A DNA stretch of 64,000 bases, taken from the sequence record NC_019521.1. One strand, given 5' to 3'. The notes below the pieces were generated by a model, which did no database searches, was not told where the DNA came from, and worked only from the letters and a program-made list of their open reading frames with translations. The position numbers and the translations under genes are program-made. This document shows positions 1,761 to 30,007 of the stretch, piece after piece (the first letter of the stretch is position 1; each line of letters begins with the position of its first letter).

Positions 1761-1902
1761 GAAACTGTAGCTCAGTTGGTAGAGTAGTAGATATATCTAC
1801 ATTCGAAAATATCTTGATTATGTATGGTTCTAGAACATACTAGAGAGACGATAGAATTCGGGTCATACCCGGTGGTCATTGGTTCGAATCCAATCAGTTT
1901 CA
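1761..1902 (+). ncRNA. 142-nt tRNA-like RNA with a 71-nt structured insertion after the D-arm
   Basis: Perfect acceptor GAAACTG/CAGTTTC, D-arm, T-arm ATTGG-TTCGAAT-CCAAT; insert 1787-1857; CGGG-tCATa-CCCG arm precedes the variable loop. Confidence 0.75.
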
Positions 1903-4438: not shown

Positions 4439-6070
4439 ATGAAAATACCTGAAGATTTAAAAGAATATATCGATAAATCTTTCTTAAGAGCTAATCATTT
4501 ACATAGAAAGTATGAAGATTATCTTAAGTCTATAGACCCAGAAACTGGTAGAGGTTCTTTGACTTTGTATCAAGAATTTGAAGATTTATTGAGAAAAACT
4601 TTTCCTGATACGACAATACAGCATTATGTACAGAAATGGAAAATACTAAATTGGTTGAAGGAAGGAATAGGATACGAATTACATAATCCTGAAACTACTG
4701 GAACTTGGGAGTCTTATGAAAGGGGTTTTGATGAATTGAAATATTATGGTTTTAGTGAAGTCAATTATGAAGATTCTTATTTCGTTGACAAGGACTCGTA
4801 TAAGTCTAAGGGTATGTCAGAAGGTTTAATGAACAAAGAAATCGTTATGACTATTACCAATAACGTAATTATGAACGGTGAGGAAACACACATATATTCT
4901 TATAAAGATTTACCATTAGTGGAATTATCTAAAACCACGGGTGTGTCTGACTGGGTAATAGGTGGTACTATTTCGTTAACAGAAAAAATACGTGAACAGT
5001 TCAAAGAGTTCCAACCTGAATTAAGTATGCATAGCTTATACGAAACTAGACTTTTTATTAACATAGGTAACAAGTTCATAAATGTAGAATTTGTACGTAA
5101 TATGTCTACAGGTAAAGTTGAAGCTAGAGACGTTCAAACTAAAAAAGTATTACCTATACAAATAGGTACAACTTATGGACCTAATTACGTAATACAAAAT
5201 CCATCCAGTTACGAAAGTCAATTGTTAAATACTGTTTTCAATTTAACATATCGTTTCACAGGAACTGACGTTTCTAAAATGTTAGGATATACTGATAATA
5301 AACCTGCGAGAGGATTGATAAGATTAGGTTTACAGTCTGAAAGAAAATATAGAGACCCTGGAATCGATTATGATATTATAGGTAATTTATTACTAGATAT
5401 GATAGTTTATGACGATGAAGCTGATATACCAGAAAATAGGGAAACTAAAGTTATTATAGAACAAGATTTCTTGGACAGTGTAGAAGAGCTTTATATAAAC
5501 GGTGAAATTGCTACAAATGAACAAATCGTTACCAAAGATTTTATAATCGTTAATGCTAAAGGTGTTACTAAAGACAAGCTTCATTGCTTATCAGAATTTT
5601 CTTTAGTATATCCTGAAGATGGATTGACGATAAAAGAAAACAATCCAGTATTTAGTACTTACGAATTCGATTTCGAGAAAATCTTTTTACCTAGGAAGCT
5701 TGGTTCCGATATCAATGATGTAGTTATAGCATCTGGTAAATTTGATAAACGTGTTCAATGTATGTTTTATGAAAGTGCTGTATGGGGTGCAATGGAAAAC
5801 AATATAATAACAGTAAATGGTAATGTAGTAAAAGCTAGCTATCCGTATTATTACAATTATGGAGAACCTGTAAAGATAGTGATTCGAAAACAACCTGACT
5901 CGTATAGATGGAAATATACTTTGTTCATTTCAAAAAGATTCAAAGAACCAGGTGAAGATTATTATCTAGAAACTAGAGAAATTACGTTAGCTGATTTAGA
6001 TGAAAACAATGAATATGTAATAGACGATCAAGAAGGTCTTTACGATTATAGTTTTCAATTCACGTCATAA
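4439..6070 (+). CDS. Putative virion protein sharing an N-terminal module with 2027..4333
   Basis: 543 aa; similar first ~70 aa; structural-gene context. Confidence 0.5.
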   Translation: MKIPEDLKEYIDKSFLRANHLHRKYEDYLKSIDPETGRGSLTLYQEFEDLLRKTFPDTTIQHYVQKWKILNWLKEGIGYELHNPETTGTWESYERGFDELKYYGFSEVNYEDSYFVDKDSYKSKGMSEGLMNKEIVMTITNNVIMNGEETHIYSYKDLPLVELSKTTGVSDWVIGGTISLTEKIREQFKEFQPELSMHSLYETRLFINIGNKFINVEFVRNMSTGKVEARDVQTKKVLPIQIGTTYGPNYVIQNPSSYESQLLNTVFNLTYRFTGTDVSKMLGYTDNKPARGLIRLGLQSERKYRDPGIDYDIIGNLLLDMIVYDDEADIPENRETKVIIEQDFLDSVEELYINGEIATNEQIVTKDFIIVNAKGVTKDKLHCLSEFSLVYPEDGLTIKENNPVFSTYEFDFEKIFLPRKLGSDINDVVIASGKFDKRVQCMFYESAVWGAMENNIITVNGNVVKASYPYYYNYGEPVKIVIRKQPDSYRWKYTLFISKRFKEPGEDYYLETREITLADLDENNEYVIDDQEGLYDYSFQFTS

Positions 6071-22924: not shown

Positions 22925-23725
22925 ATGAAATTCATCAAAGTAAAACATAACAGTAGATTCTGTAAAGAACATTCAACTCCAGATTCTTGGAAACTTATCT
23001 TAACAGAACATTCAGATTATCTGTCATATCGTGAGATGTCTGAACGTAGAGAAATTCAATCTTTCTTACAAGCCCCTTGGTCTGATCGTGAATTATCACA
23101 CGCTTCTGATAGTACATGTAAGAAGAAAATGATGATAAAAATCATAGCTGAATCTCGTGGAATATCTTTGATTGAAGCTTTGACTGTTACGTTAGAATCA
23201 AAATACGAAACTATTAAAAGTATGATAGAATACGGTAAGTCAGTTTTAGTAAACGAAACTGGTTCGTATTCTGACATGGATTCTTATTTTGATATACATG
23301 AATGTGAGATAGTGAAAACATTAGAATCTGAAGGTATTGTATTTCCAGTAAATGATAGTTTCGATCCTTTAAATAATGAATCAATTCTTTTAGAAAATCA
23401 TGAAAGAACTGAACGTTCTGAATCCGGTTTAGCTAGAAGATTTGATGAATATTTCAAATGTGAAGTTCCAGAAGATTTAGGTCTTATATTCGATTTAAGA
23501 AATCGTGACAGGGAATGGTTATTACGTTCTATCATGAATTCGAAAAATATCTACACTTCCACAACAGCTCAAGATTTCAAACAAATTACAGATTTGTACA
23601 ATCAACTTAAAGAACTTAGAGTTTCCGATAAGACTTTACATATTTGCGTACATGGTAGTAACGCTAAGAAGAAAATCGAAGAATTGTTTGAGAACGAAGT
23701 TTATAACAAAGTAATCATTTACTAG
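22925..23725 (+). CDS. Hypothetical protein
   Basis: 266-aa ORF. Confidence 0.75.
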   Translation: MKFIKVKHNSRFCKEHSTPDSWKLILTEHSDYLSYREMSERREIQSFLQAPWSDRELSHASDSTCKKKMMIKIIAESRGISLIEALTVTLESKYETIKSMIEYGKSVLVNETGSYSDMDSYFDIHECEIVKTLESEGIVFPVNDSFDPLNNESILLENHERTERSESGLARRFDEYFKCEVPEDLGLIFDLRNRDREWLLRSIMNSKNIYTSTTAQDFKQITDLYNQLKELRVSDKTLHICVHGSNAKKKIEELFENEVYNKVIIY

Positions 23726-23727
23726 AA

Positions 23728-24102
23728 ATGACTGAAAGAAAAACTTTTACGAAATGGATCGAAGATTCTAGAAATGAATTATCGTCAACATTCGAACATA
23801 TAAATAATTCTATCGTTTTGTATCATAGAAATAAAATTTGGGCTATCAAATATGTAGGCATGCTAAGTTTCAAAGATAGTGATGTTACATTCGAAATATA
23901 CAAATATGGTTCACATAAACATATGGAAGCGTTTAGTGTTAATTCTTCTATCATTGGTGAGATATACGAATTCGACAATCCTAAAAGGGAATGTATCAAA
24001 ATAGAATTTACTTATGAAAGATTTATCGAAAGATTGAAATTGATAGTGGATTATTTGATAGACTATTGTAAAAATTCTAGTAAAGTTAGGTACTATTATT
24101 AA
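23728..24102 (+). CDS. Hypothetical protein
   Basis: 124-aa ORF. Confidence 0.7.
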   Translation: MTERKTFTKWIEDSRNELSSTFEHINNSIVLYHRNKIWAIKYVGMLSFKDSDVTFEIYKYGSHKHMEAFSVNSSIIGEIYEFDNPKRECIKIEFTYERFIERLKLIVDYLIDYCKNSSKVRYYY

Positions 24103-24112
24103 AAGAAATTAT

Positions 24113-25054
24113 ATGAAAGCAGAGAAGTTAACGAACGAACATCACAGCTATATGCGTATGGCTAAAACTTGGGCTGATGATCAATCCTATGCTAAACGTA
24201 GAAAGGTTGGAGCTTTAGTTGTAAAGGATGGTCAGATTTTATCACATGGTCATAATGGAACTATTTCAGGTTTCAATAATGCATGCGAAGATGAAACTGA
24301 GCAAACTTATAATGAACATGTTTTACATGCTGAATCTAACACATTGATGAAATTGGCTAGAAATGGTGGTAACGGTTCTAACGGTGCTATTATGTATTGT
24401 ACTGACACTCCTTGTGTAAACTGTGCTAAACTAATCAAACAGTCTGGAATCAAAACTTTCTATTACGAAAGAGAATACTGGGATTTGTCAGGTTTAGATT
24501 TACTATTAATGTCAGGTGTTGAAGTAATTAGAATCGATTCTTCTACAGGTCTATTACATAAATTGGACCTTAAGGATGACGCTTCATATTTCAGGAAAGA
24601 AAATCTTGGATTAGTACATAAAATGGATAGAACTATCGAGGAGCTTTTCATGAAACTTAACGATTTCTGGGGACCTAAGTATTATGGGAAACTTACTAAC
24701 GGACCTACTGATGTACTTTTGAAACGTAATAAAATCGTTATTAAAATAGCTCTTAAGAAAGACGCTCCAAAGGAAATACATGATGTAACTGACGAAGATT
24801 TCATATCAACTATGAATTCGTTTAATCTTGATACAATGTTCGTTGACGAATCCGGTAATGTTTCAGATGAACGTTCTGATTATCGATCAATAGTAATAAA
24901 CGTAACAACTAAAGACTATTGGGATAGATACGAAAGAGATACTCTATTCTATGGTTATAAACTATCTGATATAGCTTATATCAAATTCGAACCTTTGAAC
25001 CCGGAACCAGCTGTTAAAGTGAATAGTCATGAAGATGTAGAAATTCATTTGTAA
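24113..25054 (+). CDS. dCMP deaminase with a ~170-aa C-terminal extension
   Basis: RRKVGALVVKDG..ILSHGHNG, LHAESN, TDTPCVNCAKLIKQSGI zinc-deaminase motifs. Confidence 0.92.
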   Translation: MKAEKLTNEHHSYMRMAKTWADDQSYAKRRKVGALVVKDGQILSHGHNGTISGFNNACEDETEQTYNEHVLHAESNTLMKLARNGGNGSNGAIMYCTDTPCVNCAKLIKQSGIKTFYYEREYWDLSGLDLLLMSGVEVIRIDSSTGLLHKLDLKDDASYFRKENLGLVHKMDRTIEELFMKLNDFWGPKYYGKLTNGPTDVLLKRNKIVIKIALKKDAPKEIHDVTDEDFISTMNSFNLDTMFVDESGNVSDERSDYRSIVINVTTKDYWDRYERDTLFYGYKLSDIAYIKFEPLNPEPAVKVNSHEDVEIHL

Positions 25055-25069: not shown

Positions 25070-25465
25070 ATGAAAACTCTAGTGGAAACGATAACAGATT
25101 CTAAGAAAGCTTTAAACATAATCGAAACTATTCTACTTTCTTATAGTAGAGGTATTATAACTGAAGATACTACATTTAATGCCGGTGCTTTAGTTAGAAA
25201 GGGTACAGCTTTATGGACTGGTATGCAATTACTTATCAAAACTTATGCTATTCATGGAACTAGAAAAGTTAAGAAATTACCGGAATCTAATCAAACTGAG
25301 TTAAGTATCGAAATTAAAATTCCCCATACGTTTTACTGGTATAAGATCGATAAGGAGGTTACTAAGAACAAAGTTTACAAACTTCTTTATACTACATTCT
25401 CAGAAAATACTAAGAAACGATATAATGATTCTGATGGATTTATAACCGTTGAAGAAATAAGATAA
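25070..25465 (+). CDS. Hypothetical late protein, capsid-targeting-like N-terminus
   Basis: Starts MKTLVE; late promoter immediately upstream. Confidence 0.65.
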   Translation: MKTLVETITDSKKALNIIETILLSYSRGIITEDTTFNAGALVRKGTALWTGMQLLIKTYAIHGTRKVKKLPESNQTELSIEIKIPHTFYWYKIDKEVTKNKVYKLLYTTFSENTKKRYNDSDGFITVEEIR

Positions 25466-29653: not shown

Positions 29654-29979
29654 AACATATAACTAATTTTGAACTTAACGAAAGTTTGGCTGACATCAAA
29701 CAAAAAGAACATACCAAACTTTCTAAAAAGGTATTACCGATAGTCAATACAATGATTAACTTAACTGTTTTATGTATTGCTATTTTCATGCTTGTCACAT
29801 TTACGATTGAATCTTTATCACATGTCGAATCTAGATCGATATTCGATAAGATTGCATACGTTATTCTAAGATTCTTACGAAGTGCTGTTTTGATAGGTTC
29901 GTTATATCTATCGATAAAGGTCGTTTTCACATTCTTCAAATATCTATATAAAAAGCTATCAGGTGGTACTGAAGTATAG
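29650..29979 (+). CDS. 2-TM membrane protein with capsid-targeting-like N-terminus
   Basis: MKHITNFELNES followed by two hydrophobic helices; ATGA coupling. Confidence 0.65.
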   Translation: MKHITNFELNESLADIKQKEHTKLSKKVLPIVNTMINLTVLCIAIFMLVTFTIESLSHVESRSIFDKIAYVILRFLRSAVLIGSLYLSIKVVFTFFKYLYKKLSGGTEV

Positions 29980-30007
29980 ATTTTGATTCATTCCGTTACA
30001 TTACATG

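Follow-up and report, generated by a model that had tools for sequence, protein, structure and literature searches.

Gene 8 of Sphingomonas phage PAU, at positions 1761–1902, is best read from its sequence as a gene of the tRNA(CAU) family that is interrupted by 70 nt after nucleotide 27 or 28, and the anticodon-stem site at nucleotides 28/29 appears to be a previously undescribed hot spot for structured inserts in many phage lineages. Interruption of a phage tRNA gene is a phenomenon that has already been noted; what is new in PAU is the location of the insert in the stem and the odd anticodon loop that is left when the flanks are joined. The window analysed here is the first 64 kb of the PAU genome (NC_019521, 219,372 bp), with which it is identical, and window coordinates are therefore genome coordinates. 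Within it, 1761–1902 is a real tRNA-like gene, the last of its operon, and its likeness to tRNA is far beyond chance.

The acceptor stem of gene 8 (GAAACTG, 1761–1767, with CAGTTTC, 1895–1901) is Watson–Crick paired at 7/7 positions and is followed by discriminator A1902, the D arm GCTC-AGTTGGTA-GAGT (1770–1785) is of the 4-bp class I type, the T arm reads ATTGG-TTCGAAT-CCAAT (1878–1894), and U8, G18G19, the G15/C48 partners and the T loop are also intact. The first-pass annotation had described the acceptor stem, D arm and T arm as complete, and this description held: the D arm, an acceptor stem of 7 bp and a T arm whose loop is of the GTTCGAATC type, as in Rfam model RF00005, are all present, and the gene scores 45 bits against a gathering score of 29, with an E-value of 2.4e-6 for the whole window and a match to model positions 1–71. 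On the plus strand, the tRNA 5′ part occupies 1761–1788 (acceptor strand 1761–1767, U8 and A9, D arm 1770–1785, A26 at 1786, G27 and U28) and the 3′ part 1859–1902 (remaining anticodon arm, variable loop, T arm, acceptor strand 1895–1901 and A1902). The variable loop GGTC (1874–1877) has 4 nt, and CCA is not encoded. As encoded, the gene measures 142 nt, against about 70–95 nt for a tRNA with a 5-bp anticodon stem and a 7-nt loop, and the Rfam model can fit an anticodon arm to it only by means of a 4-nt loop; the full 142 nt folds with a z of −1.6, and ARAGORN at default settings misses the gene.

Seven tRNA genes are annotated in GenBank at 1273–1903, between gp1 and gp9. The first six, on the plus strand at 1273–1754, are ordinary genes for Asn GTT, Trp CCA, Cys GCA and three with anticodon CAT, on which ARAGORN, Rfam (53–70 bits) and GenBank agree. 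Spacing in the array is 4–9 nt by ARAGORN, gene 8 starting 6 nt past the preceding tRNA, and an intrinsic terminator (a 12-bp stem followed by a T run, plus strand, 1949–1976) lies 46 nt 3′ of gene 8, so that no gene follows gene 8 in the tRNA transcript. The PAU genome thus carries four CAT-anticodon genes, at 1518–1591, 1598–1672 and 1681–1754 in addition to gene 8; the anticodon loop of gene 7, UUCAUUA, is unusual in having a pyrimidine at position 37. In PAU, 26.6 of every 1000 codons are AUA, which accounts for a third of the Ile codons, so there is demand for a CAU-type tRNA-Ile, and it is plausible that at least one of the four CAT genes encodes such a tRNA. Bacterial initiator identity resides in a 1×72 mismatch, A11–U24 and three G–C pairs at the bottom of the anticodon stem. 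The CAT arm of gene 8 had been called initiator-like, and of these features the three G–C pairs alone are present: G1–C72 is paired and C11–G24 is found, both elongator features, and gene 8 does not qualify as a bacterial initiator tRNA. The initiator hallmarks in PAU belong instead to gene 5 (1518–1591), which has a U1×U72 mismatch, A11–U24 and three consecutive G–C pairs, although at 28–30 and not 29–31.

As a phage, PAU is an orphan. Its proteins gp1, gp9 and gp10 have no homologues among cultured phages, searches by DNA and protein finding PAU itself only; PAU alone was returned when gp9 and gp1 were searched in IMG/VR, and a search of gp9 against 5.8 billion proteins gave the self-match only. 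Members of Sphingomonas have a G+C content of about 65%. At 31.3% G+C, the base composition of the PAU genome is a poor fit to the named host.

The position of the interruption was determined by a removal test in which excision of a single insert was tried at every position, a 5-bp stem and a 7-nt loop with U33 and R37 being required of the product. There was one solution, in which 70 nt are taken out after nucleotide 27 or 28. The joined anticodon arm then reads A26 G27U28C29G30G31 / GUCAUAC / C39C40G41G42U43 GGUC, with G–U at both top pairs of the stem, and the joined flanks form a 72-nt cloverleaf that ARAGORN calls tRNA-Met(cat). When compared with uninterrupted tRNA(CAT) genes of Ackermannviridae, the joined flanks showed 83–84% identity over nucleotides 5–67, in one piece across the junction, the corresponding segments being GAGT A GTCGA CTCATAA TCGAT TGGTC ATTGG in Klebsiella phage FKP14 and GAGT A GT|CGG GTCATAC CCGGT GGTC ATTGG in PAU. 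The Ackermannviridae genes, such as those of FKP14 and of Salmonella phage PhiSH19, share with PAU the T arm AUUGG/CCAAU and, spanning the junction, GAGUAGUCG, but unlike PAU they lack an insert, their loop is the canonical CUCAUAA and their variable loop has 5 nt. Judged by these matches, gene 8 is most probably related to elongator-type tRNA(CAT) genes of other large phages. Relative to FKP14, the 31–39 pair has changed from A–U to G–C and positions 32/38 from C,A to G,C, so that pairing has been kept and extended, not lost.

The insert therefore occupies 1789–1858 or, equivalently, 1788–1857 (plus strand), as indicated by both the removal test and the homologue alignment; since T1788 and T1858 are interchangeable, the 5′ part of the tRNA may equally end at 1787. 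An insert of 71 nt at 26/27 had been proposed earlier, and while the insert itself is upheld, its boundary is better placed 1–2 bases further 3′: alignment at the junction scores 19 for 27/28–28/29, 16 for 26/27 and 17 when the palindrome described below serves as the anticodon arm, the margins being small. The last arrangement had also been raised as a second reading, with the palindrome as a reduced anticodon arm. It is the one chosen in the optimal Rfam alignment, where GUAGA-UAUA-UCUAC becomes a shortened anticodon arm and 67 nt are shifted to the variable region, and it scores slightly lower at the junction, 17 against 19.

At the 5′ end of the insert lies the perfect 14-nt palindrome GTAGATATATCTAC (plus strand, 1787–1800; fold z −3.1), whose RNA folds into a hairpin of 5 bp topped by a UAUA loop; this hairpin spans the 5′ junction and draws on exon bases G27 and U28. 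Perfect palindromes of at least 14 nt number 39 in the 219-kb PAU genome, against about 30 in simulations, so chance is an unlikely explanation for one that falls precisely at tRNA position 27. The CAT hairpin TCGGG-TCATA-CCCGG (plus strand, 1858–1872, CAT at 1864–1866) has a fold z of −2.1. Both hairpins were present as the first-pass annotation had given them, and they are the only elements that exceed shuffled folding. The remaining 57 nt of the insert (plus strand, 1801–1857) had been drawn as a long hairpin; its named pairs can be formed, yet the folding is at chance level (minimum free energy −7.9 kcal/mol, z −0.10), 85 of 200 shuffled sequences folding equally well. The whole 71 nt from 1787 to 1857 gives a z of −0.69. 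Of the self-contained unit of two arms that had been envisaged, the palindrome thus survives and the 57-nt arm does not, and the proposal of a structured multi-arm RNA with two extra arms finds no support, its large arm folding no better than shuffled sequence.

Searches for the origin of the insert were negative. No second copy that would mark it as a repeat or mobile element exists elsewhere in the PAU genome, no direct repeat exceeding those in shuffled sequences points to internal duplication, and the insert contains no promoter by consensus scan and only trivial small ORFs that overlap the tRNA. Rfam, with its ribozyme and intron families, returned nothing but tRNA for gene 8 at E ≤ 10, and similarity to 72 other phage tRNA inserts was below the null. 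A pattern for the CAT arm found PAU alone in IMG/VR, apart from coding matches, a search for an FKP14-type tRNA with an insert at PAU's site gave two false matches and nothing else, and gene 8 occurs in no other genome or contig of the collections searched.

The loop restored on joining, GUCAUAC, is itself unusual in that G32 and C38 can pair, leaving a 5-nt loop UCAUA. Two pattern scans of 185,579 species genomes, which covered common D-arm and T-loop sequences only, returned no tRNA with a GUCAUAC loop. A metagenome contig (L109:4217–4293) carries a bacterial-looking stand-alone tRNA(CAU) gene with the same loop as PAU's joined flanks, promoter-like hexamers of its own and an encoded CCA; GTDB representative genomes contained no gene like it under the patterns used.

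Gene 8 was placed in a wider context by scanning IMG/VR for a common D arm and T arm lying 65–95 nt apart, a search that is unbiased as to insert site. This first scan returned 86 loci, about 55 of them with 7/7 acceptor stems, and a second scan added about 30; in the interrupted loci tRNA alone was recognised by Rfam. Among the 21 distinct genes from the first scan that had clean solutions, the insert lay after nucleotide 28 or 29 in 13 and in the anticodon loop in the other 8. Its removal gave canonical arms for Lys UUU, Asn GUU, Ile UAU, Val UAC and Pro UGG, with Thr and others in the second scan, and the exon pairs 27–43 and 28–42 covary across the insert (CG/CG, GG/CC, UC/GA).

Many of these loci carry one recurrent type of insert, here named family A, of 42–55 nt and mostly located after nucleotide 28; those located there begin with UA following an exon G. 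The insert forms a hairpin with compensatory changes in 7/7 pairs, followed by an invariant CAGCA(A) and then by 7–13 nt more. A covariance model of the family (R1) matched 24 times in the 86 loci. Rfam detected no known RNA family, ribozymes included, in a family A insert, and we found no published name for the family. Family A loci in IMG/VR fall within our series L007–L089 and L118–L172 (for example L036:905–1026, L041:14658–14774 and L128:3235–3349). The family is also present in cultured jumbo phages, namely Serratia phage BF, Erwinia phage pEa_SNUABM_12 and relatives, Pectobacterium phage CBB, Cronobacter phage GAP32 and Yersinia phage fHe-Yen9, where the genes are inconsistently labelled tRNA-Lys, -Phe, -OTHER or -Undet. 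Each genome of these Eneladusvirus/Rak2-like jumbo phages carries several copies, and two copies lie where nothing is annotated. The 50-kb tRNA region of pEa_SNUABM_12 that was examined (L177) holds at least five elements, at 5379–5424, 23721–23764, 24175–24219, 25374–25415 and 29914–29990, and the sole tRNA-Lys listed in that region is an interrupted one, which argues that such genes are functional. An uninterrupted tRNA-Lys of Pseudomonas phage PaBG is 90% identical across the junction.

The PAU insert resembles family A in its position, after nucleotide 28 (range 27–29) and so at the same or an adjacent site, in having flanks that rejoin to a normal cloverleaf and, if the junction is read G|UA (27/28), in beginning with UA after an exon G. 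It differs in content: family A has the covarying 7-bp hairpin and the invariant CAGCA in 42–55 nt, whereas the 70 nt of PAU have neither motif, CAGCA being absent and the R1 model giving no match to 1761–1902 (cmsearch with filters off, E ≤ 10). Taken with the match of the joined flanks to uninterrupted tRNA(CAT) genes, the recurrence of the 28/29 site makes a non-canonical tRNA intron the best-fitting of the possibilities that had been listed for gene 8.

Several further observations were made in the same material. A second candidate family of inserts, recognised by eye from the motifs AAUUUC...GGCUA...GUUACUU, is found at L018, L033, L043, L045, L047, L053, L069, L077 and L164; genes for tRNA-Asn and tRNA-Cys carry it after nucleotide 28, and those for tRNA-Tyr(GUA) within the anticodon loop. 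Three 140-nt genes (L126, L134, L155) have a 68-nt anticodon-loop insert that holds a T-arm-like ATGAG-TTCAAAT-CTCAT and recalls the ‘intron that encodes a tRNA’ of Lak megaphages. Six other loci (L014, L044, L059, L063, L065, L071) show a D arm, the CAGCAA motif and a T arm, with acceptor pairing absent at the expected place, and may represent a different tRNA-derived RNA. In phage contigs that have interrupted tRNAs, a GOLLD RNA (316 bits) and tmRNA genes also lie near the tRNA clusters (L077:2851–3249, L033:5605–6001, L019:1842–2248, L077:1276–1681). Finally, pEa_SNUABM_12, which to our knowledge is not known as a recoded phage, has a gene labelled tRNA-Pyl(cta), amber-reading, at L177:18444–18519.

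Oversized phage tRNA genes have been reported before. In Lak megaphages, ‘enigmatic introns’ in tRNA genes were noted in 2019, their mechanism being left unexplained (Devoto et al., 2019; PMC6784885), and this is the only report bearing on the mechanism of phage tRNA introns that we found in the literature. The Lak genes are like gene 8 in being oversized through short inserts without an Rfam family. Their inserts, as located by tRNAscan in eukaryotic mode, lie in or near the anticodon loop and are conserved between genomes (PMC6784885), whereas the PAU insert lies in the anticodon stem (27/28–28/29), has no relatives and leaves a non-canonical loop.

The explanation that we prefer, though tentatively, is that gene 8 encodes a tRNA(CAU) from which the insert is spliced by proteins guided by the tRNA body. 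Gene 8 would be co-transcribed with the six upstream tRNAs and its ends trimmed as theirs are. The insert would be an intervening sequence of the 28/29 kind seen in many large-phage tRNA genes and would be cut out, and the halves rejoined, by proteins and not by the RNA itself, a step suggested by the class and not by PAU. The cutting enzyme would recognise the tRNA body, which would set the cut sites and so explain the presence of unrelated inserts at one place. The joining enzyme may be a host RNA ligase such as RtcB; a host enzyme is proposed since none of the PAU proteins tested proved to be a ligase, RNA ligase, RtcB and polynucleotide kinase being absent from the 42 unannotated mid-size proteins and likewise from PAU's sparse GenBank annotation. 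The predicted product, a 72-nt tRNA(CAU) with the junction GAGUAGU|CGGGUCAUACC, would have an anticodon loop of uncommon tightness; its decoding may be poor, or its role may be other than the standard one.

In favour of this splicing hypothesis are the intact tRNA body with its score of 45 bits, the regular spacing in the array and the terminator that follows; joined flanks that are called tRNA-Met(cat), match uninterrupted tRNA(CAT) genes at 83–84% identity and do so at the best-scoring junction; the retention of the 31–39 pair relative to FKP14; and the use of AUA, which creates a demand for CAU-type tRNA-Ile. It is also favoured by the interrupted IMG/VR genes, 13/21 of which share the site and regain canonical arms on removal of the insert, by the interrupted state of the only listed tRNA-Lys in pEa_SNUABM_12 and by the ‘enigmatic introns’ already on record. 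Against it stand the isolation of PAU, with gene 8 in no other genome; an insert that lacks the motifs of the recurrent families, as seen with R1 at E ≤ 10 and in the comparison with 72 inserts; the two G–U top pairs and a loop absent from the genome scans, one metagenomic tRNA excepted; the three other CAT tRNAs already in PAU; the lack of a ligase, RtcB or kinase among the 42 proteins; and the use of the palindrome as the anticodon arm in the optimal Rfam alignment. A more general proposal, that gene 8 is one case of a widespread phage route which removes inserts at 28/29, is neither of the group I nor of the bulge–helix–bulge type, and accepts orphan inserts because the cutter measures from the tRNA body, seems to us rather unlikely.

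The foremost competing explanation, though a doubtful one, is that gene 8 is dying: a tRNA(CAU) copy redundant with genes 5–7 would have received a 70-nt insertion and begun to drift, and its RNA, if made, would have no role. In its favour are the orphan insert that folds at chance level, the non-canonical anticodon loop missing from the genome scans, the shortened variable loop, the two G–U stem pairs, the three other CAT tRNAs and the lack of a ligase among the tested proteins. However, decay does not sit easily with a tRNA whose other features are all intact in a genome of 31% G+C, with changes in the anticodon arm that keep or extend pairing, or with an insert that lies at or beside a recurrent site and not at a random one.

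We regard as unlikely the proposal that the insert is retained in a stable, non-decoding tRNA-like RNA whose ends are processed as those of a tRNA, possibly as a decoy or sponge for a host tRNA-binding enzyme or nuclease. A precedent may be seen in the stable RNAs rnaC (139 nt) and rnaD (119 nt) of phage T4, also called species 1 and 2 (L117:2909–3172), which are comparable in size to gene 8 and likewise lie distally in the tRNA cluster of their phage. The T4 RNAs fall below tRNA thresholds (rnaC, whose T arm is canonical and whose acceptor-like stem has 8 bp, reaches just 17.5 bits, to tRNA-Sec) and have no apparent flanks that could be rejoined, whereas gene 8 reaches 45 bits and joining its flanks gives a tRNA(CAU). 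Retention of the insert would leave the palindrome hairpin exactly at the place of the anticodon arm, producing the mimic of a tRNA with a huge variable region that is drawn in the Rfam alignment, and would be compatible with the maintenance of a tight CAU hairpin by paired changes. It is opposed by the central 57 nt, which have no structure above chance, by the absence of conservation that would indicate selection on the insert and by the lack of an identified partner protein.

GenBank labels gene 8 (there 1761–1903) as ‘tRNA-Ser AGA’ in two joined pieces, and the gene is thus already annotated as an intron-containing tRNA, but the label is wrong. ARAGORN reproduces this call at 1761–1903 when introns are allowed, giving a class II tRNA-Ser(AGA) with a 47-nt anticodon-loop intron at 32/33 and the TCGGG-TCATA-CCCGG hairpin as a long variable arm. 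This structure is highly improbable: its anticodon stem has 3/5 pairs, one of them G–U, the 4-bp D arm is of class I, the T arm is preceded by TGGTC, a variable loop of class I, and the flanks have their closest homologues in tRNA(CAT) genes, which are also of class I. In metagenomes GGGTCATACCC does occur almost only in variable arms of bacterial tRNA-Ser(GCU) genes, which would favour the serine reading, but these matches were forced by the search pattern used.

Group I and archaeal bulge–helix–bulge introns are the known ways of interrupting tRNA genes, and the archaeal ones can, like the PAU insert, lie in stems. A group I intron has a catalytic core of about 200 nt or more and is inserted in the anticodon loop, and the bulge–helix–bulge motif consists of two 3-nt bulges at the two cut sites with a 4-bp helix between them; we know of no splicing endonuclease in the bacterial host domain. 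That the PAU insert belongs to either type is scarcely credible, as its 70 nt are too short for a group I core (the first-pass annotation had set group I aside for the same reason, and Rfam finds no family but tRNA at E ≤ 10), its site is in the stem and outside the anticodon loop, and a bulge–helix–bulge scan at gene junctions 27–28 and 97–98 was blank, although this strict, simple scan was also blank on one giant-virus tRNA-Tyr.

The prevailing view is that tRNA genes of bacteria and their viruses are interrupted by nothing other than group I introns, which are self-splicing and sit in the anticodon loop. Gene 8 of PAU presents an interruption of the kind noted in the Lak megaphages, here in a phage that is cultured and away from the canonical site, in the anticodon stem. 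The value of the PAU case is mainly that of a pointer to a hot spot for inserts which reaches the cultured jumbo phages of Serratia, Erwinia, Cronobacter, Pectobacterium and Yersinia and can therefore be tested in them. If the inserts are spliced, infected bacteria would contain a novel endonuclease–ligase pathway that acts on tRNAs; without splicing, these phages would make a class of tRNA-shaped RNAs with another role.
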